Part shown: positions 826 to 38,481 of the stretch, piece after piece
How the letters are laid out: every line of letters starts with the position of its first letter
How positions within the stretch are numbered: position 1 is the stretch's first letter
From: Haliotis rubra
Lineage: Eukaryota
Direction of reading: 5' to 3'
Assembly: GCF_003918875.1 (NCBI RefSeq)
Contig: NW_025767028.1
Span: forward strand, 930,001-994,000
DNA length: 64,000 nt
Translations under genes and position numbers: made by a program
The notes under the pieces: model-generated
Database searches by the model: none
The model's input: only the letters and a program-made list of their open reading frames with translations
Told to the model about the DNA's origin: nothing

Positions 826-1467
826 AATGTCACGGCAGTGTTGACAAAAAGTCACGACAGTGTTGGTTTGATGTTACGATAGCGTTGGTTTAAAGTCATG
901 ATAGTGCTGACATAATGTCACGTCAGTGCTGACATAATGTCACGAATGTGGTGACATAATGTTGACAAAAAGTCGCGACAGTGTTGGTTTCATGTAAAGA
1001 CAATGTTGGTTTTAAGTCACGATAGTGCTGACATAGTGTCACAACAGTGTCGACAAAATGTCACGACAGTGTTGACAAAAAGTCACTACAGTCTTGGTTT
1101 AATGTTACGACAGTGCTGACATAATGTCACGACAGTGTTGACAAAAAGTCACGACAGTGGTGACATAATGTCACGGCAGTGTTGACAGAAAGTCACGACA
1201 GTGTTGGCATAATGTCACGGCAGTGTTGACAAAAAGTCACGACAGTGTTGGTTTGATGTTACGATAGCGTTGGTTTAAAGTCACGACAGTGCTGACATAA
1301 TGTTGACAAAAAGTCGCGACAGTGTTGGTTTCATGTAAAGAAAATGTTGGTTTTAAGTCACGATAGTGCTGACATAGTGTGACAACAGTGTCGACATAAT
1401 GTCACGGCAGTGTCGACATAATGTCACGACAGTGTTGACATGTCATGGCAGTGTTGGCATAATGTCA
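826..1467. repeat. ~21-bp degenerate minisatellite (gtcacgacagtgttgacataat)
   Basis: Visible periodicity. Confidence 0.85.
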
Positions 1468-1710
1468 ACAGAGGTGTCAAACCAGTTCAGTCGTTCAGTC
1501 TGTCTGGAATAAAGAGACCTTCCCTCCAGGATTACTTGAACTCAGTTAACTGAGGGCAGTAACCAAACATGTGGCATATATCCCACCAGATGATTGAACA
1601 TCCTGTACCCAATACTCCAACTGGCAACTGATATACGCTTCACTGATCAATACCTGGCGAGATATCAGCCAACGCTGACACATATACCTCAGGAAATATC
1701 TCTAAGTGGA

Positions 1711-4457
1711 GGTACGTACACACATACAACACCTTGATGTAATAAATAACACGTATCACATTCGGTAGATGTACGTACACACATACAACACCTTTATGTA
1801 ATAAATAACACCTATCACATTCAGTAGATGTACGTACACACATACAACACCTTGATGTAATAAATAACACGTATCCCATTCAGTAGATGTACGTACACAC
1901 ATACAACACCTTGATGTAATAAATAACACCTATCACATTCAGTAGATGTACGTACACACATACAGCACCTTCATGTAATAAATAACACGTGTGACGTTCA
2001 GTAGATGTACGTACACACATACAACACCTTGATGTAATAAATAACACGTGTGACGTTCAGTAGATGTACGTACACACATACAACACCTTCATGTAATAAA
2101 TAACACGTATCACATTCAGTAGATGTACGTACACACATACAACACCTTCATGTAATCAATAACACGTGTGACGTTCAGAAGATGTACGTACACACATACA
2201 ACACCTTCATGTAATCAATAACACGCATCACATTCTGTAGATGTACGTACACACATACAACACTTTCATGTAATAAATAACACGTATCACATTCTGTAGA
2301 TGTACGTACACACATACAACACCTTCATGTAATAAATAACACGTCTGACGTTCAGAAGATGTACGTACACACATACAACACCTTCATGTAAACAATAACA
2401 CGTATCACATTCTGTAGATGTACGTACACACATACAACACCTTCATGTAATAAATAACACGTGTGACGTTCAGTAGATGTACGTACACACATACAACACC
2501 TTCATGTAATCAATAACACGTGTGACGTTCAGTAGATGTACGTACACACAACACCTTCATGTAATAAATAACACGTATCACATTCAGTAGATGTACGTAC
2601 ACACATACAACACCTTCATGTAATCAATAACACGTGTGACGTTCAGTAGATGTACGTACACACATACAACACCTTCATGTAATAAATAACACGTATCACA
2701 TTCAGTAGATGTACGTACACACATACAACACCTTCATGTAATCAATAACACGTGTGACGTTCAGTAGATGTACGTACACACATACAACACTTTCATGTAA
2801 TAAATAACACGTATCACATTCAGTAGATGTACGTACACACATACAACACCTTCATGTAATCAATAACACGTATCACATTCAGTAGATGTACGTACACACA
2901 TACAACACCTTCATGTAATCAATAACACGTATCACATTCGGTAGATGTACGTACACACATACAACACCTTCATGTAATAAATAACACGTATCACATTCGG
3001 TAGATGTACGTACACACATACAACACCTTCATGTAATAAATAACAAAATCACATTCGGTAGATGTACGTACACACATACAACACCTTCATGTAATAAATA
3101 ACACGTATCACATTCAGTAGATGTACGTACACACATACAACACCTTCATGTAATCAATAACACGTGTGACGTTCAGTAGATGTACGTACACACATACAAC
3201 ACCTTCATGTAATAAATAACACGTATCACATTCAGTAGATGTACGTACACACATACAACACCTTCATGTAATCAATAACACGTGTGACGTTCAGTAGATG
3301 TACGTACACGTACACACATACCTACCACCTTAGATGTACGTACACACATCAACACCTTTATGTAATATGACACGTATCACATTCGGTAGATGTACGTACA
3401 CACATACAACACCTTAACACGTAATCAATAGATGTACGTATCACATTCGGTAGATGTACGTACACACATACAACACCTTTATGTAATAAATAACACGTAT
3501 CACATTCGGTAGATGTACGTACACACATACAACACCTTCATGTAATCAATAACACGTATCACATTCGGTAGATGTACGTACACACATACAACACCTTCAT
3601 GTAATAAATAACACGTATCACATTCGGTAGATGTACGTACACACATACAACACCTTCATGTAATCAATAACACGTGTGACGTTCAGTAGATGTACGTACA
3701 CACATACAACACCTTCATGTAATAAATAACACGTATCACATTCAGTAGATGTACGTACACACATACAACACCTTCATGTAATCAATAACACGTGTGACGT
3801 TCAGTAGATGTACGTACACACATACAACACTTTCATGTAATAAATAACACGTATCACATTCAGTAGTTGTACGTACACACATACAACACCTTCATGTAAT
3901 AAATAACACGTGTGACGTTCAGTAGATGTACGTACACACATACAACACCTTCATGTAATAAATAACACGTGTGACGTTCAGTAGATGTACGTACACATAC
4001 AACACCTTCATGTAATAAATAACACGTATCACATTCGGTAGATGTACACATACAACACCTTCATGTAATCAATAACACGTGTGACGTTCAGTAGATGTAC
4101 GTACACACATACAACACTTTCATGTAATAAATAACACGTATCACATTCAGTAGTTGTACGTACACACATACAACACCTTCATGTAAGAAATAACACGTGT
4201 GACGTTCAGTAGATGTACGTACACACATACAACACCTTGATGTAATAAATAACACGTATCACATTCTGTAGATGTACGTACACACATACAACACCTTTAT
4301 GTAATAATGACACGTATCACATTCGGTAGATGTACGTGCACACATACAACACTTTCATGTAATAAATAACACGTATCACATTCAGTAGATGTACGTACAC
4401 ACATACAACACCTTCATGTTATAAATAACATGTATCACATTCAGTAGATGTGCGTAC
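1711..4457. repeat. 59-bp minisatellite, about 46 copies
   Basis: agatgtacgtacacacatacaacaccttcatgtaataaataacacgtatcacattcagt. Confidence 0.95.
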
Positions 4458-7129: not shown

Positions 7130-8024
7130 CTAATTGGTGAGAGTTCGGAAAAGGCAGATTTGACTTGAAAAACCTAAATTTGATATCTGTTTGTCATCCT
7201 ACACGGGGTGATATCGCCGTAAAACTTCATCACAAACGTTGCAAACCATTGTGACAACCATCTGTTACGTCACAATTGAATGACGTCAATAATCTCTCGG
7301 ACACAGCAGGCACTGTTATTTTGTGTGTGTTTAGGGTGTTGCAATAATGGCTTTAGTGATAGATTTGATCTCCACGTCGTATATTTTATATAAAAAACAC
7401 CAACACTGGGTGATAAGGTCATAACTGTGATTGAAGTGATCAAGTGAATGTAACTGAATGGTTTTGGTTTTAAGTGATACATTTATATCCCGGTCGTCTA
7501 TGTGATATAGAAAATACCAACATTAGCTGATAAAGTTATAATTGTATGAAGTGATCGAGTGTAATGTAGCTGAAATTGTCTTAAATTGTAGACCAGGCTC
7601 TCGATGGAAGGCAAGCCATGGAGGTTTAAGCTTTCTTGTCGAATCGTTGCCATATTACATGTCAAAAGTCGTGTGAATATTTTCCTCAACACTTTGTGGG
7701 CAGTAAATGTCATCTCGTCCATAATGTGTCCCTTAAACAGAACTGCTATGGACCGTCACCGTGTTGTCGGAGTCGTAGGACATCCACGTCAACAGTTTCG
7801 TCAGCTAAACAGACCTAGGTGGCATGAACCCCACTGTACTGTAACCATGGTGATAACCAGTCCTCGTTCTCCGACACCGTGATTCATGTCAGTATGCTTC
7901 ACATCCTCCTCGTGTTTGTCTAGTCCAACAATAAACAGGCTGGCATCCAGCATCATGCAGCCTGACTAATTATTACCTGCACAAACTGTGCGTGTGATTG
8001 TGAAGTGTTGATGTCCGTTTATCA

Positions 8025-31740: not shown

Positions 31741-32204
31741 TATATATATAACATATATATGTTACATTGAACATGAATATCTCCACTAATTTGGGGGAAA
31801 CAACTGCAAACTGCAGATAGATTGCACGATGATCATGCATCAAATTACTGAAAGCATGTGCAGATATCGTGCATGTGAACAGCTGGGTTTTGGTGTAAGG
31901 TTTTGTTAAGAATTCGCCAATTTTCACTGAGTTTCATCGCTTATTGAACTCTTGACAATAATATTTTCAACGTTACGATTCTGTTTTACAATACAAGACG
32001 TAGGGGGAACAGAATCTTAACCCACATTTTGTGATTTTCTGAGATATCTATTTTAGTGGGTTGCCAGACCATGAGGAATCATCTGAAATCTAGTTACCTC
32101 CCCTATCTCTACCAGTTTGTTCATTGCATCATCTCCCTAAATAAATATCACAATCCACATTCCCAGAGACCAATTTCAGAAAGAAAGTAATAACCCACAA
32201 AAAC

Positions 32205-33814
32205 ATGGCGGAGCACATGTTCACGGATCAGGAAGTTTTAGATCAATTGTGAGCAAACACAGAGGATGACGACAGCACTGCAGATCCAACATTTGTAGAA
32301 TCTGATAGGGAACATGATGTCAGCACTTCTGATTTGGTGAGTTTTAATTTCTTTGTGATTGTGACATTTTTTATGTCTTTTGTTGGTTATCATGTTGTTT
32401 CCCAAACACCTATTTCACAAGCCCTCACAACCCTCATGTTGTATAACGTGGAAACAGTCTAATACTGACAGACTATTTTAATGAGAAATGTAAGTGGTCT
32501 AAATAATAATCCATATTTTAAGTGTATGGTTTGTTTTCCAAAAGAGAAGGCCATAGAAAAAGATCTCAATAGGGTTATCACATTCTTTGTGAAATGAAAG
32601 TAAGGCATGCTGTGGGGTACGATGCATCGGAATATCAATGGAAATTTTAAATTAAAGGTACTGAATGAGGTTTTTAATGTTGACATTTGTTTTCTTTTAT
32701 AGATAACCCTGATAGATCTGCCTGAAGAAATAATAGTCAGAATCTTGGAATATGTTGAAGTGGAGGACTTAATCACATCTATCACCCTTGTCTGCAAAAC
32801 ACTTTACAATATTGTCCATGGAAACAGTATTCTCTGGAGCAAGATAGAAGAATTTTCCGTTGATTTTTTCCAATTCAAAATGAACCACCTACAAAACATT
32901 ATGAGTCATTCAGCATGTTTTAGATACTTTGAGGTACCATATGCTGACGATCTGTTTTCATCCACCTGTGCAAGTGATATGTTGTGTGAGTGTGAGTGAG
33001 TTAAGATTTAGAGTCACATCGGCAATATTTCAGCCGTATCGTGACTAAATCAAGATATAAATATAGTAAGAATTAAAGGTAAATTATAAAATTCTGTCAC
33101 CGAAGGACAGTAAAACAACTAGATTATCACAGATATAAATATAAAACTAGTAACTTAATCTAAAATATTTTAACTATACATGGCAATACAATATAAAAAC
33201 AGGCTAGAGATTGCTAACGACTAAAGGTAGATCACCATACTAGGGACCATGGGGACTTACAGTACATTTGCTTCCTGCATGGGCCCTAGCTGGATTTACA
33301 CCATCCCCTCAGCCGTTAGCAATTTAGACACATCTAGATATGTTGTGTGAAAACCATGTCCCTCATCATGTCCAGTTTGTTTACACTTCTGAACACTGGA
33401 GAGAAGTCATCAGACAGTCATCCCCAAAGCTTCAAGTGAATGAGATGTCATCAAAAGAGTTCTACAGACTGAGTGACCTCAGAGAAATGTTCACTGTGAG
33501 AACAAAAGCAGCAGACGGGTCCCATTTGAGGTTCAAGGATGTAGTTCGGTTCAAAATGGAGTCTGGTGAGAACGTCGGTATGATTGAGACCAGCACCTCC
33601 TTCAACTCTGATCTGTGGACTGCCATATCCGTTAAAAAACGTGGAGCACAAAAGGACATCAGTGCATTTCAATTCAAAAACAAATATTTGGCTCCAAGGA
33701 AAATTGACAAAGCAAAACATGCTGCCCTACATACCCCCAGTCCAGCACCTGTTCTACATGTCTCTGAAGGAAGCCTCAAAGGGTCAAGACACTGAGGACG
33801 TTCTCTATGCATAG
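32205..33814 (+). pseudogene. Disrupted spliced F-box/transposase-fragment fusion gene
   Basis: Exon 32205-32336 (aaaacATGg, in-frame TGA at 32250, GTGAGT donor); exon from 32703 (LIDLPEEIIVRILEYVEVEDLITSITLVCKTLYNIV..ILW); interrupted by an insertion at 32990-33336; frameshift near 33725. Confidence 0.7.
32990..33336 (-). mobile_element. 5'-truncated non-LTR retroelement 3' fragment
   Basis: 14-bp TSD GATATGTTGTGTGA (32976-32989, 33337-33350); ends in aatattgcc...aactcactcac, resembling the SINE tails. Confidence 0.75.
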
Positions 33815-33815
33815 A

Positions 33816-33959
33816 ATGAAGAGTTCAGCTATTCTTACAATCTTGGGATATTTTGAAATTGGGGATTTAATTAAGTATGCCACCCCTGTCTGTGAAAGAC
33901 TTCACAGTATTGTTCATGTTACTGAGTTTGAAGAGTTTCAACTACAAATCAAAGATTGA
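33816..33959 (+). pseudogene. Second, truncated F-box-like segment
   Basis: ILTILGYFEIGDLIKYATPVCERLHSIVH aligns without gaps to the first F-box at protein and DNA level. Confidence 0.6.
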
Positions 33960-34734
33960 TTTTCACAATGTTAAGTACAAGTTTACTGGGTTTTGAATGT
34001 TGAAGTCTTCAAAATTGTTGACTTTTAATCTTGAAGGTTTGATTCTCTAGCAAACTTGACAGTAAAGGATTAGTGTTTTGGGCAGTACACTGATTCCACT
34101 GTGCATATGGTATGTGTGAGATGAAACTGAATCAGTTTGGTCACAAACACTTCAAGGTATGAGCTTGGATAGTCTGGCATTTCTATACATCATTTCGTTG
34201 AAGGGAAAATTGTTTTAATTTATTTGTTATATGAATTTTGAACAAATATAAATATATTTTTAATTCTGTCAACCGTGTTTTGTTGTTTCTAGTAGGCACG
34301 TGATCAAGTAAATCTGATAATTTTAGAAAGACAATGACAACACTATTTCAGAAAAAACGTAATAATCCACACAGTCGTCAGAGGTGGTGTAATTTCAAAT
34401 GTCTTCAAAACAACTTACTGTGGTTATATATGGCCAAATATTTGTCATTTGGAAAGGACATGGATCAACTACCAAATAAATACAAATTTGTGCGATAATA
34501 ATAACTTAGGGATTTATCAACTGAATTAAATAAATCAAATGCGTTTTTCTCGAAATAACAGTAGTGTGGGTTATGGTTATGTTCTCCTGGGGTCTTCAAT
34601 ACATCAGTTCATGTGTAACAACACATTTAAACGGTATGAAACATTGTGCAAAATCTACTTTAGAACCGTTGACTGAAGTAAGTGGCTACATTTACACTAG
34701 TGAGTCTAAACTTTTGATTGGTAATATACATAGA

Positions 34735-35308
34735 GTGGCTAGCTAGTAGAGGCTAGCACCCCTAGTACAGTGGCTAGCTAGTAGAGGCTAGCACCCCTAG
34801 TACAGTGGCTAGCTAGTAGAGGCTAGCACCCCTAGTACAGTGGCTAGCTAGTAGAGGCTAGCACCCCTAGTACAGTGGCTAGCTAGTAGAGGCTAGCACC
34901 CCTAGTACAGTGGCTAGCTAGTACAGTGGGGGCTAGTAGAGGCTAGCACCCCTAGTACACAGCTAGTGGCTAGCTAGTGGGGCCAGCTAGAGCACCCCTA
35001 GTACAGTGGCTAGCTAGTAGAGGCTAGCACCCTAGCACCCCTAGTACAGTGGCTAGCTAGCTAGCTAGGAGGCCAGCACCCCTAGAGGCTAGCACCCTAG
35101 TACAGTGGCTAGCTAGTAGAGGCTAGCACCCCTAGTACAGTGGCTAGCTAGTAGAGGCTAGCACCCCTAGTACAGTGGCTAGCTAGTAGAGGCTAGCACC
35201 CCTAGTACAGTGGCTAGCTAGTAGAGGCTAGCACCCCTAGTACAGTGGCTAGCTAGTAGAGGCTAGCACCCCTAGTACAGTGGCTAGCTAGTAGAGGCTA
35301 GCACCCCT
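34735..35308. repeat. 35-bp CTAG-rich minisatellite (one more unit at 37242-37272)
   Basis: agtggctagctagtagaggctagcacccctagtac. Confidence 0.9.
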
Positions 35309-35309
35309 T

Positions 35310-37160
35310 ACATACCCCCCAGTGCAGCACCTGTTCTACACATACCCCCAGTCCAGCACCTGTTCTACATACCCCCAGTCCAGCACCTGTTCTACATACC
35401 CCCAGTCCAGCACCTGTTCTACATACCCCCAGTCCAGCACCTGTTCTACATACTCCCCAGTCCAGCACCTGTTCTACATACCCCCAGTGCAGCACCTGTT
35501 CTACACATGCCCCCAGTCCAGCACCTGTTCTACATACCCCCAGTCCAGCACCTGTTCTACATACCCCCAGTCCAGCACCTGTTCTACATGCCCCAGTCCA
35601 GCACCTGTTCTACATAGCCCCAGACCAGCACCTGTTCTATATATACCCCAGTCCAGCACCTGTTCTACATATAGCCCCCAGTCCAGCACCTGTTCTACAT
35701 ACCCCCCAGTCCCAGCACCTGTTCCTACATACCCCCAGTCCAGCACCTGTTCTACATACCCCCAGTCCAGCACCTGTTCTACATGTACCCCCAGTCCAGC
35801 ACCTGTTCTACATACCCCAGTCCAGCACCTGTTCTCACATACCCCAGTCCAGCACCTGTTCTACATGCCCCTCAGTCCAACACCCTTGTTCTACATACCC
35901 CCAGTCCAGCACCTGTTCTACATGTCTCTGAAGGCTGCCCTACATACCCCCAGTCCAGCATCTGTTCTATTATAGCCCCAGTCCAGCACCTGGTCTACAT
36001 ACCCCAGTCCAACACCTGTTCTACATATCCCCAGTCCAGCACCTGTTCTACATACCTCAGTCCAGCACCTGTTCTACATACCCCCAGTCCAGCACCTGTT
36101 CTCATACATAGCCCCAGTCCAGCACCTGTTCTACATACCCCCAGTCCAGCACCTGTTCTACATGCCCCCCAGTCCAACACCTGTTCTACATACCCCAGTC
36201 CAGCAACACCTGTTCTACATATACCCCAGTCCAGCACCTGTTCTACATACTCCCCCAGTCCAGCACCTGTTCTACATACCCCAGTCCAGCACCTGTTCTA
36301 CATGCCCCCCAGTCCAACACCTGTCTCTACATACCCCCAGTCCAGCACCTGTTCTACATACCCCAGTCCAGCACCTGTTCTACATACCCCAGTCCAGCAC
36401 CTGTTCTACATACCCCCAGTCCAGCACCTGTTCTACATACCCCCAGTCCAGCACCTGTTCTACATACCCCCAGTCCAGCACCTGTTCTACATACCCCCAG
36501 TCCAGCACCTGTTCTACATACCCCCAGTCCAACACCTGTTCTACATACCCCAGTCCAGCACCTGTTCTACATACCCCAGTCCAGCACCTGTTCTACATAC
36601 CCCCAGTCCAGCACCTGTTCTACATACCCCCAGTCCAGCACCTGTTCTACATGCCCCCAGTCCAACACCTGTTCTACATACCCCCAGTCCAGCACCTGTT
36701 CTACATACCCCCAGTCCAGCACCTGTTCTACACATACCCCCAGTCCAGCACCTGTTCTACATGGGCCCCCCAGTCCAGCACCTGTTCTACATACCCCCAG
36801 TCCAGCACCTGTTCTACTATACCCCAGTCCAGCACCTGTTCTACATACCCCAGTCCAGCACCTATTCTACATACCCCAGTCCAGCACCTGTTCTACATAC
36901 CCCCAGTCCAGCACCTGTTCTACATATACCCCTGATCAGCACCTGTTCTACATACCCCCAGTCTGCCCCATGTCCAACACCTGTTCTACATACCCCAGTC
37001 CAGCACCTGCATGCCCCTGCAGCACCTGTTACATACCCCAGTCCAGCACCTGTTCTACACATACCCCCAGTCCAGCACCTGTTCTCAGTCCATACCCCTG
37101 TTCTGCATGCCCCAGTCCAGCACCTGTTCTACATACCCCCAGTCCAGCACCTGTTCCAGC
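35310..37160. repeat. 25-27-bp minisatellite derived from transposase coding sequence
   Basis: cccccagtccagcacctgttctacata, identical to 33728-33759. Confidence 0.9.
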
Positions 37161-38033
37161 ACCAGGGGGCATTTAATTAAGTATGCCACCCTCTGTTCAG
37201 AAAGACTTTACAGTATTGTTCATGTTACTGAGTTTGAAGAATAGCTAGTAGAGGCTAGCACCCCTAGTACAGCTTTGGCGTTTGTGTCGATCCTAGCTAG
37301 TAGAGGGCTAGAACGGTGATAGTCGTCATAAGCATCGATCTACGCAATTTGTGATATGACGACAGGCATGAAGCAAGTCGACGGGTCTGGCCACGCACTT
37401 CCGTTAAACCAGTTGTAACCTGGAGCTTCATAGAGGCTTGTGATGGGACGGGACGGTGATTGATGGCTACGTGCATCTGAATCAGACCCCACCGCCAATC
37501 ACGTGGAGGTGTGTCAGCGAGCCTCCCATGACACGCACCTGTAGGACGTCACAGCTAATGCTTTAACCAATCGTACATCTTACTATCTCTCCACTCGAAC
37601 AACATTTGTGTACTGAATAATGAGTAACACATTAAACTAGTCATACCGGTTAAATACGCAGCATGTATAACTCGAGACAAAAAAAAAGTTACGTTGAAAA
37701 AATTGTTATATTTTTCTCAGAATTGAGCAGGGGGGAGCAAGCTAAGAATATATTACTGTATTATGTGACGCATTTACAAAACTCAAACATTAATTAATAT
37801 ATAACGTGATTCTAATACGCCAAGCGACTTCATAAGGGATATCACTTGATGATAATGAGCGAGTTACATCCTGGTTCTAATATACTTCCCAGAACCTTCT
37901 CCCGTAAGTAACCGACTTGAGAGGTGACAGGTCAGCATTAACCACCTGTAATGTCCAGCGTGTTACTGTTCGACAAAACACAGTCAACAAAATACCGAAT
38001 CTGACGATCACATCCATTTTCATGTAAAAGGAC

Positions 38034-38190
38034 ACGGTTGCCTAGTGATTAAAACGTTCGCTCGTCATGCCGAAGACCCAGGTTCGATTCCCTTCTTGGG
38101 TACGTGTGAAGCCCATTTCTGGTTTCCATCATAGTGATATTGTTGAAATATTGCTATAAGCGGCGTAAAGACATACTCACTCACTCACTC
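38034..38190 (+). mobile_element. tRNA-derived SINE, family B
   Basis: A/B boxes and shared tail. Confidence 0.8.
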
Positions 38191-38481
38191 TTACAAAAGG
38201 ATGATTCTTCATGGCGGTTTTACAGACATGCCACAAGGTATCAGATCAGTTCTACATAACTTCTAGCTTGTCGGGTTTTCGGTTACCCGCACGAAAAGTG
38301 CCGGAACCTCGTTCATCCGGACTCTTTATACATGGACCACGTTTATCCAGACATTACTGCTGATCGTGAAATCACTCAATAGCCACGATTTTTAATCATG
38401 ACACTTATTAATCTGGACGATATAGCCAGAGGGCTACTGTCCGCACTACGGGGTGTGAGTGTAGGAAGGTGTGGTACTTAC

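Follow-up and report, generated by a model that had tools for sequence, protein, structure and literature searches.

A stretch of 64,000 nucleotides from the abalone Haliotis rubra (contig NW_025767028.1, positions 930,001 to 994,000 of the forward strand; hereafter the window) contains, at window positions 31994-34597, a dead, non-autonomous copy of a Sola1-superfamily DNA transposon that has been cut short by an internal deletion. A DNA transposon is usually pictured as a transposase between two repeats. Comparison of the window element with its relatives indicates that its family also carries, upstream of the transposase, a selected companion gene encoding an F-box/leucine-rich repeat (LRR) protein, which we propose to be an adaptor for SCF (SKP1-cullin-F-box) ubiquitin ligases; taken as a whole, we regard this reading as probable. 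In the literature searched, no transposon-encoded F-box has been described in Sola elements or in any animal DNA transposon, with an earlier annotation in Repbase or by Bao et al. 2009 being possible. The nearest paper describes the reverse direction, in which nematode F-box genes captured a Tc1/mariner helix-turn-helix domain (PMC12062965).

A search of the 1.38-Gb genome recovered two further copies of the window element. C1713 (968066-972581) is a 4.5-kb copy that is 91-95% identical to the window element, and C2224 (181719-182775) is a 1-kb derivative in which both ends are kept and the F-box is absent. The similarity of these copies to the window ceases exactly at 31994/32003 on the left and at 34597 on the right, and the flanks are unrelated. 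Thus, the ends of the window element are true transposon ends and not chance matches. The left terminal inverted repeat (TIR; 31994..32027, plus strand) begins where the C1713 and C2224 similarity begins, and the right TIR (34564..34597, minus strand) carries a GGTCTTC terminus common to all three copies. The repeat is imperfect, with a length of 32-34 nt in this family; in the window, a repeat search paired arms of 32 nt (31995-32026 and 34565-34596) with 75% complementarity. The tetranucleotide AATA is found at both flanks, at 31990-31993 and 34598-34601 (positions checked by script; no strand assigned), as the left and right target-site duplications (TSDs). The corresponding flanks are ATTG/ACTG in C1713 (3 of 4 positions match) and ambiguous in C2224. 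A 6-bp TSD (CAATAC) was possible for the window copy taken alone and received no support from the other copies.

Inside these ends, exon 1 (32205..32336, plus strand, read from the sequence) comprises 44 codons that encode a transposase N-terminal motif (M..F.D.EVL..L) and then an acidic tract; in all related families this motif opens the transposase open reading frame (ORF). Its ATG lies at 32205, and the inactivating TGA at 32250-32252 reads TGG in C1713. The intron (32337..32702, plus strand, also a sequence read) runs from GTGAGT to a polypyrimidine-TAG, with the donor GT at 32337 and the acceptor AG at 32701-32702, such that exon 2 starts at 32703 in phase 0; the sister family C2072 has the same exon 1 with a GTAAGT donor. 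The F-box exon is truncated (32703..32989, plus strand, with the F-box at ~32715-32846), its LRR part having been deleted past 32989. Across 32703-32996, Pfam identifies PF12937 (F-box-like; E=1.5e-9, 37.9 bits against a cut-off of 24.3) and PF00646 (E=5.4e-7), and the F-box-like score falls on the first 48 residues of the frame that opens at 32703. A nested interspersed repeat of ~347 bp follows (32990..33336, no strand assigned), bracketed by an exact 14-bp duplication (32976-32989 and 33337-33350). This repeat is very abundant, with thousands of candidate copies in the genome search and 90-95% identity among the scored ones; it matched neither tRNA nor Rfam and is hence labelled retroposon-like only. 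Beyond the repeat lies a remnant of the transposase C-terminal region, 3' of the catalytic core (33351..33814, plus strand, 91% identical to C1713), whose K..D...M/L motif corresponds to the conserved K681/D684/M688. A 17-nt deletion past 33725 shifts the frame of this remnant, the original stop of which is the TAG at 33812-33814. The 3' untranslated region contains a degenerate second copy of part of the F-box exon (33839..33918, plus strand, 76% identical to 32741-32820), which is also present in C1713 and gives no Pfam F-box match. A first-pass annotation of the window, made from its letters alone, had described the TIR-like ends with their AATA duplication, the acidic exon with its TGA and phase-0 splice to an F-box at 32703, and a copy killed by the TGA, the nested insertion and a frameshift; all of these features are present in the element.

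When 32990-33350 is excised, the F-box runs in frame into the transposase tail (with the ORF at 33340-33795), a join that the first-pass annotation had noted and that is reproduced here. It had interpreted this join as a native F-box/transposase fusion, while allowing that it might be the product of an internal deletion. Alignment with C1713 contradicts the first interpretation and upholds the second. The alignment breaks at window 32989 and resumes at 33348, and between these points C1713 has ~2.2 kb, measured in its own coordinates and including a 511-bp miniature inverted-repeat transposable element (MITE) private to that copy. In this extra segment the F-box frame extends across leucine-rich repeats and closes with a TAA stop, downstream of which are a TTTCAG acceptor and a phase-0 transposase exon with a basic KRKR start, the catalytic core coming next. 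The window sequence picks up again just past the last catalytic motif. Because the breakpoints share TGAA, a single deletion took the LRRs, the stop, the acceptor and the entire core out of the window copy, with its junction at 33347..33351 (plus strand), where the F-box exon meets the transposase C-terminal region. The absence of a catalytic core from the window element, which had also been noted at first pass, is accounted for by the same lost segment. On this alignment, the in-frame join in the window is a deletion artefact and not native. The history of the copy began with the internal deletion at the TGAA microhomology, which took away the LRRs and the core and placed the F-box in frame with the transposase tail; the retroposon-like repeat next inserted at the junction, and the TGA and the 17-nt deletion completed inactivation. 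The 14-bp target duplication of the nested repeat ends exactly at the internal deletion junction; two independent events would coincide in this way with odds of ~1 in several hundred. The C1713 transposase is itself broken, by frameshifts and by the MITE with its 9-bp duplication. The MITE (L054 ~7486-7996, minus strand; 511 bp) has inverted ends of ~70 nt and the duplication AATAAGAAC, and lies inside the GQN.N motif of the transposase core.

That the native product is nonetheless a true F-box-transposase fusion, made by splicing the F-box, with or without the LRRs, onto the transposase, is very unlikely. Such a product might be glimpsed in the window join itself, in C247 (L072, C247:42597-46112; frame 1006-2118, minus strand), where a complete F-box/LRR is fused in frame to the transposase C-terminal region with 371 aa open, and in the Mytilus coruscus gene model P0155, which links F-box/LRR to the transposase N-terminal region. 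However, the F-box/LRR frame runs into a stop codon in all fuller copies and in all families (C1713, C156, C284, Mytilus, L084, L086 and others), so that no uninterrupted frame passes from one gene into the other, and the F-box/LRR module was found in none of 154 homologous transposase proteins. Both abalone "fusions" are without a catalytic core and are deletion products; C247 is a second, independent derivative, from another family, that parallels the window copy. Thus, such joins recur as decay products, and in-frame "fusions" in decayed copies call for caution. P0155, for its part, is an unverified, truncated prediction. Public gene models also swallow the transposon F-box/LRR exon: P0155 (Mytilus coruscus CAC5384821) attaches it to a transposase N terminus, and in P0160 (Tegillarca granosa KAJ8302248) it has been merged with a host kinase gene flagged "low quality". 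Both are likely annotation chimeras.

The Sola superfamily, reportedly set out by Bao et al. in 2009, was the affiliation suggested at first pass, and the assignment is supported. Sola elements are defined by a DDD (three-aspartate) transposase and 4-bp duplications (PMC10741241). The intact relative C156 has a 710-aa transposase together with a 242-aa F-box/LRR frame, and its family measures 4683 bp with a perfect 24-25-nt TIR. Perfect 4-bp duplications flank three of four copies of this family (AAGT, CTTT and, in Haliotis asinina, AACT), giving 4-bp duplications in two families; a 2-bp TSD was considered for the C156 family and dropped in favor of 4 bp, with the terminal T/A counted as flanking sequence. 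The best transposase match for this genome is an H. asinina protein with 90% identity. Residues D430, D508 and D551 show no variation across an alignment of 20 homologs, and in a set of 71 their conservation is 99-100%. Since E549 and E558 are equally invariant in the 20-sequence alignment (E549 is 93% conserved among 71), the third catalytic residue is not fixed by sequence alone. Pfam returned only DUF7869 for the transposase, a name found in no paper searched, and is thus no aid in naming the superfamily. The RNase H-like core of Sola1-1_AP is printed in the supplement of Majorek et al. 2014 (PMC3985635). In a comparison made by eye and not by computed alignment, the C1713/C156 core and the E.10_Sola1-1_AP row align one for one across the FDL, FY.RKL..YN, GYC..W.E...RGS.EI, SD.C.GQN.N and GH. 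blocks, with about half of the first 68 columns identical; the Sola2 and Sola3 rows are unlike it. The elements therefore resemble Sola1 in their TIRs, 4-bp non-TTAA target duplications, three invariant aspartates and motif-for-motif core, and we file them there. They are also of comparable size, 4.5-4.7 kb beside a mean of 5.4 kb for bivalve Sola1 (PMC10294476). They differ in carrying the F-box/LRR gene, none having been described in Sola elements in the literature searched. For one Sola1 transposase homolog, P0135 (942 aa, JGI/Logan), the domains listed are DUF7869 and PF04843 (herpesvirus tegument N-terminal, a deubiquitinase-type domain), the latter of which may represent another ubiquitin-system module joined to this transposase family.

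The F-box/LRR gene extends well beyond the window family. A profile built from eight F-box/LRR frames gave 70 matches at 42 loci in this genome, 31 of which lie 0.2-1.6 kb upstream of Sola1 transposase matches on the same strand (C2733 and the window itself were placed by translation and alignment). The other 11 are without a nearby transposase match and are mostly broken fragments. From family to family, protein identity drops to 23-42%. The sister family C2072 has the same order as C1713, with exon 1, the F-box exon and the transposase exon in succession, and Sola1 copies that are 31-36% identical to C156 have no F-box/LRR frame nearby. In H. asinina and Mytilus galloprovincialis an unannotated open frame (242 and 251 aa, respectively) directly precedes the annotated transposase gene, and a profile made only from abalone sequences matches these frames with E=2e-97 and 7e-46. 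No F-box/LRR frame accompanies the Pinctada and Bradysia relatives of the transposase. An exhaustive HMMER search gave 63 representative clusters at E<=1e-30, mostly of 220-260 aa and matched end to end; the named relatives are from Mytilus coruscus, Tegillarca granosa and the annelid Owenia, the last known from the protein match alone. A word-based protein search with the F-box/LRR frame gave no match and no annotated orthologue. For two of the HMMER relatives, on contigs L084 and L086, the frame adjoins transposases of 747 aa and 766 aa that are 43% and 42% identical to C156. Of 80 metagenome loci encoding a Sola1 transposase, five carry the F-box/LRR frame immediately before it, which brings the pair to seven environmental contigs. 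In a further 28 of the 80, 1 kb or more of sequence precedes the transposase and contains no F-box frame (31 negatives if Pinctada, Bradysia and Mytilus locus L076 are included, of which L076 does carry the frame by the abalone-only profile). The F-box/LRR gene is an old, conserved and selected companion of a large Sola1 clade in molluscs. The proposal made at first pass, that the parent family carries an F-box gene as cargo and that other TIR-bounded copies should contain it, is borne out by C1713 and by the TIR- and TSD-bounded C156 family, and the cargo is wider than proposed, occurring under purifying selection in many families and several species.

Selection was gauged from C156 and the H. 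asinina copy, a single sequence pair, for which the ratio of nonsynonymous to synonymous substitution rates (dN/dS, a check proposed at first pass) is 0.24 in the F-box/LRR frame and 0.23 in the transposase. Coding identity in this pair is 92-93%, compared with 84-86% in the non-coding 5' and 3' parts. PF12937 is detected in the intact frames as in the window, with E values of 6.6e-11 (C156) and 2.4e-9 (C284), and all three exceed the gathering score. An AlphaFold2 model of the F-box/LRR protein, built on a 53-sequence alignment, has a pLDDT of 95.5 and a pTM of 0.90, and predicts a three-helix F-box followed by an LRR solenoid of alternating strand/helix repeats. The top Foldseek matches in the PDB are FBXL2, SKP2, FBXL17, KDM2B, FBXL3 and TIR1, all of them SCF receptors solved with SKP1, and the best viral structure matches are F-box/LRR proteins of giant viruses, entomopoxviruses and a nudivirus. 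Pfam LRR_4 is sub-threshold in the F-box/LRR frames. The solenoid belongs to the family and is missing from the window copy, whose LRRs are deleted. Like the cellular FBXL receptors (SKP2, FBXL2, FBXL17, KDM2B and FBXL3), the protein places an F-box before an LRR solenoid. It differs in being short (~240 aa, with ~six LRRs) and transposon-encoded, and in sharing only 13-21% identity with the solved FBXLs. Collectively, gene content, conservation and fold strongly support an SCF-adaptor cargo in this family, the function itself being predicted.

The gene layout suggests how two proteins might be produced from one element. In every family showing the F-box LP motif, a polypyrimidine-AG acceptor is positioned 5-10 codons ahead of it. 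Between the acceptor and the LP motif, the frames of C156 and H. asinina lack an ATG, and in both a conserved ATG abuts a GTRAGT donor ~290 nt upstream. In the main clade of F-box-bearing elements, the transposase start could be placed at 12 loci, and at 11 of these the distance from the F-box stop to the transposase ATG is -19 to +12 nt, overlapping ATGA arrangements included; a conserved M-S-x-F-x-L-x-E/D-V-L motif follows the ATG. This stop/start layout suggests either termination-reinitiation or a nearby alternative acceptor. The transposase is probably made by one of these routes, termination-reinitiation or alternative splicing, which would hold its level below that of the F-box protein. 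The window family and C2072 differ from the main clade in that the transposase N-terminal motif is exon 1, upstream of the F-box exon. Alternative splicing would thus select between their two products, which would have 44 residues in common. In the window family, one transcription unit would thus give two products from a shared first exon: exon 1, with its ATG, N-terminal motif and acidic tract, joined to the F-box/LRR exon with its own stop would yield an FBXL-type protein of ~290 aa, and exon 1 joined to the second acceptor directly past the F-box stop would yield a DDD transposase of ~700 aa. Juxtaposed reading frames of this kind are familiar from bicistronic stop/start elements, such as SART1 ORF1/ORF2, influenza B M1/BM2 and calicivirus VP1/VP2. 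The likeness, here seen in sequence alone, is a downstream ATG that overlaps or abuts the upstream stop (ATGA and TAAnnATG). We know of no bicistronic stop/start arrangement described for eukaryotic DNA transposons.

The transposase tree gathers every F-box-positive tip other than the window family, 13 in number, into a single 21-tip clade free of F-box-negative members; outside this clade there are 21 negative tips, with the window family as the sole positive. The F-box tree places the window family and C2072 on a deep separate branch. A retroelement interrupts L167, a relative of the transposase of the window family. Several observations weigh against an F-box/LRR companion gene inherited and used as proposed. 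Support for the main F-box clade is only 0.69, and the window family sits outside it on a very long branch, beside an F-box-less Pinctada element; L168, its closest public relative, is also without an upstream F-box. Thus, the F-box module may have been acquired separately by the window family, the alternative being an ancestral origin. The window's own family is extinct in this genome, all four of its copies being broken, and dN/dS was taken from one pair. P0155 splices F-box/LRR into the transposase N terminus, and a minor fused isoform may therefore exist. Finally, splicing, bicistronic translation and expression are predicted from sequence, as are SKP1 binding and any substrate of the F-box/LRR protein.

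These points leave the origin of the gene to be weighed against other explanations. DNA transposons do capture fragments of host genes, and the window family, being low-copy and dead and having a degenerate second F-box fragment in its 3' region, could be viewed as having captured an F-box once, in the manner of Pack-MULE transduplication, without any function. Host-like coding sequence between transposon ends is indeed what the two situations have in common. The first-pass annotation had raised capture of a single host locus; however, no close parent gene exists: the best matches unlinked to a transposon are weak (for example C2313, E=5e-10). In contrast to transduplicated fragments, the gene is full-length and intact in other families, is under purifying selection, holds a fixed position relative to the transposase, and keeps that linkage across families and species at 23-42% protein identity, and its presence in the sister family C2072 contradicts capture by a single family. 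We consider functionless capture highly improbable. Even less credence is due to the idea that Sola1 elements land preferentially beside host F-box/LRR genes, or that the two form a domesticated host gene pair. The 11 F-box/LRR loci without a nearby transposase match might be taken in its favor, but these are mostly broken fragments, whereas elsewhere both genes lie within one TIR-bounded, TSD-flanked unit at unrelated loci in several species, and copies are present in multiple at 97-98% identity.

With a companion gene of the transposon as the preferred explanation, the question becomes what its product would act on. The F-box would bind host SKP1, and the ~six LRRs would deliver a target to the SCF ubiquitin ligase. 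Tentatively, and at somewhat short of even confidence, we favor a host factor that limits transposition as the target; the transposase itself, for turnover or for removal after integration, is a less likely target, and something else altogether is slightly less likely again. We advance only tentatively, at slightly below even confidence, the fuller proposal that a deep lophotrochozoan Sola1 lineage encodes its own FBXL-type SCF adaptor, translated ahead of and coupled to the transposase, to have a host restriction factor or spent transposase ubiquitylated. That the protein acts on the element's own transposase and not on a host defence factor, limiting its dosage or removing it from the integration complex, seems unlikely, though it has several observations to recommend it: the two genes are tightly coupled genetically and probably translationally, the N-terminal 44 residues would be common to both products in the window family, selection is purifying overall and not arms-race-like, and the F-box and transposase trees agree in their major groupings. 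However, agreement of the trees is expected from linkage alone, and most Sola1 lineages do without the F-box gene.

The sequence neighboring the element also bears traces of it. Just downstream, a 35-bp satellite occupies 34734-35308 and resumes at ~37243 (window 34734-37270). Within it is a 27-bp minisatellite of ~61 copies (35309-36963, degenerating to 37156), the unit of which corresponds to part of the 3' coding region of the element itself (33727-33760); a transposon fragment has thus been amplified into a tandem array. After the minisatellite, a 74-bp fragment (37167-37240) is 92% identical to 33861-33934. Further along, a short interspersed repeat at 38020-38195, with a tRNA-like box GGTTCGATTCCC and an (ACTC)n tail, is unrelated to the F-box.

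Polerovirus P0 and Agrobacterium VirF degrade host or coat proteins. Together with the F-box/LRR proteins of giant viruses, entomopoxviruses and a nudivirus, they provide the closest parallel to the proposed transposon gene, that is, a selfish or invading entity with its own SCF adaptor, here predicted from sequence and model. The difference is the carrier, a cut-and-paste DNA transposon with no extracellular phase. If the proposal is correct, these elements would be the transposon counterpart of viral F-box proteins and would use a bicistronic stop/start strategy undescribed for a eukaryotic DNA transposon. The gene would also define a ~240-aa protein family that genome annotation has largely missed because the F-box exon is without an ATG of its own. 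Its conservation is judged from its fixed position across Sola1 families only 23-42% identical, in gastropods, bivalves and environmental eukaryote DNA. A conserved and selected F-box/LRR gene in such elements would mean that they intervene in host protein turnover, as many viruses do.

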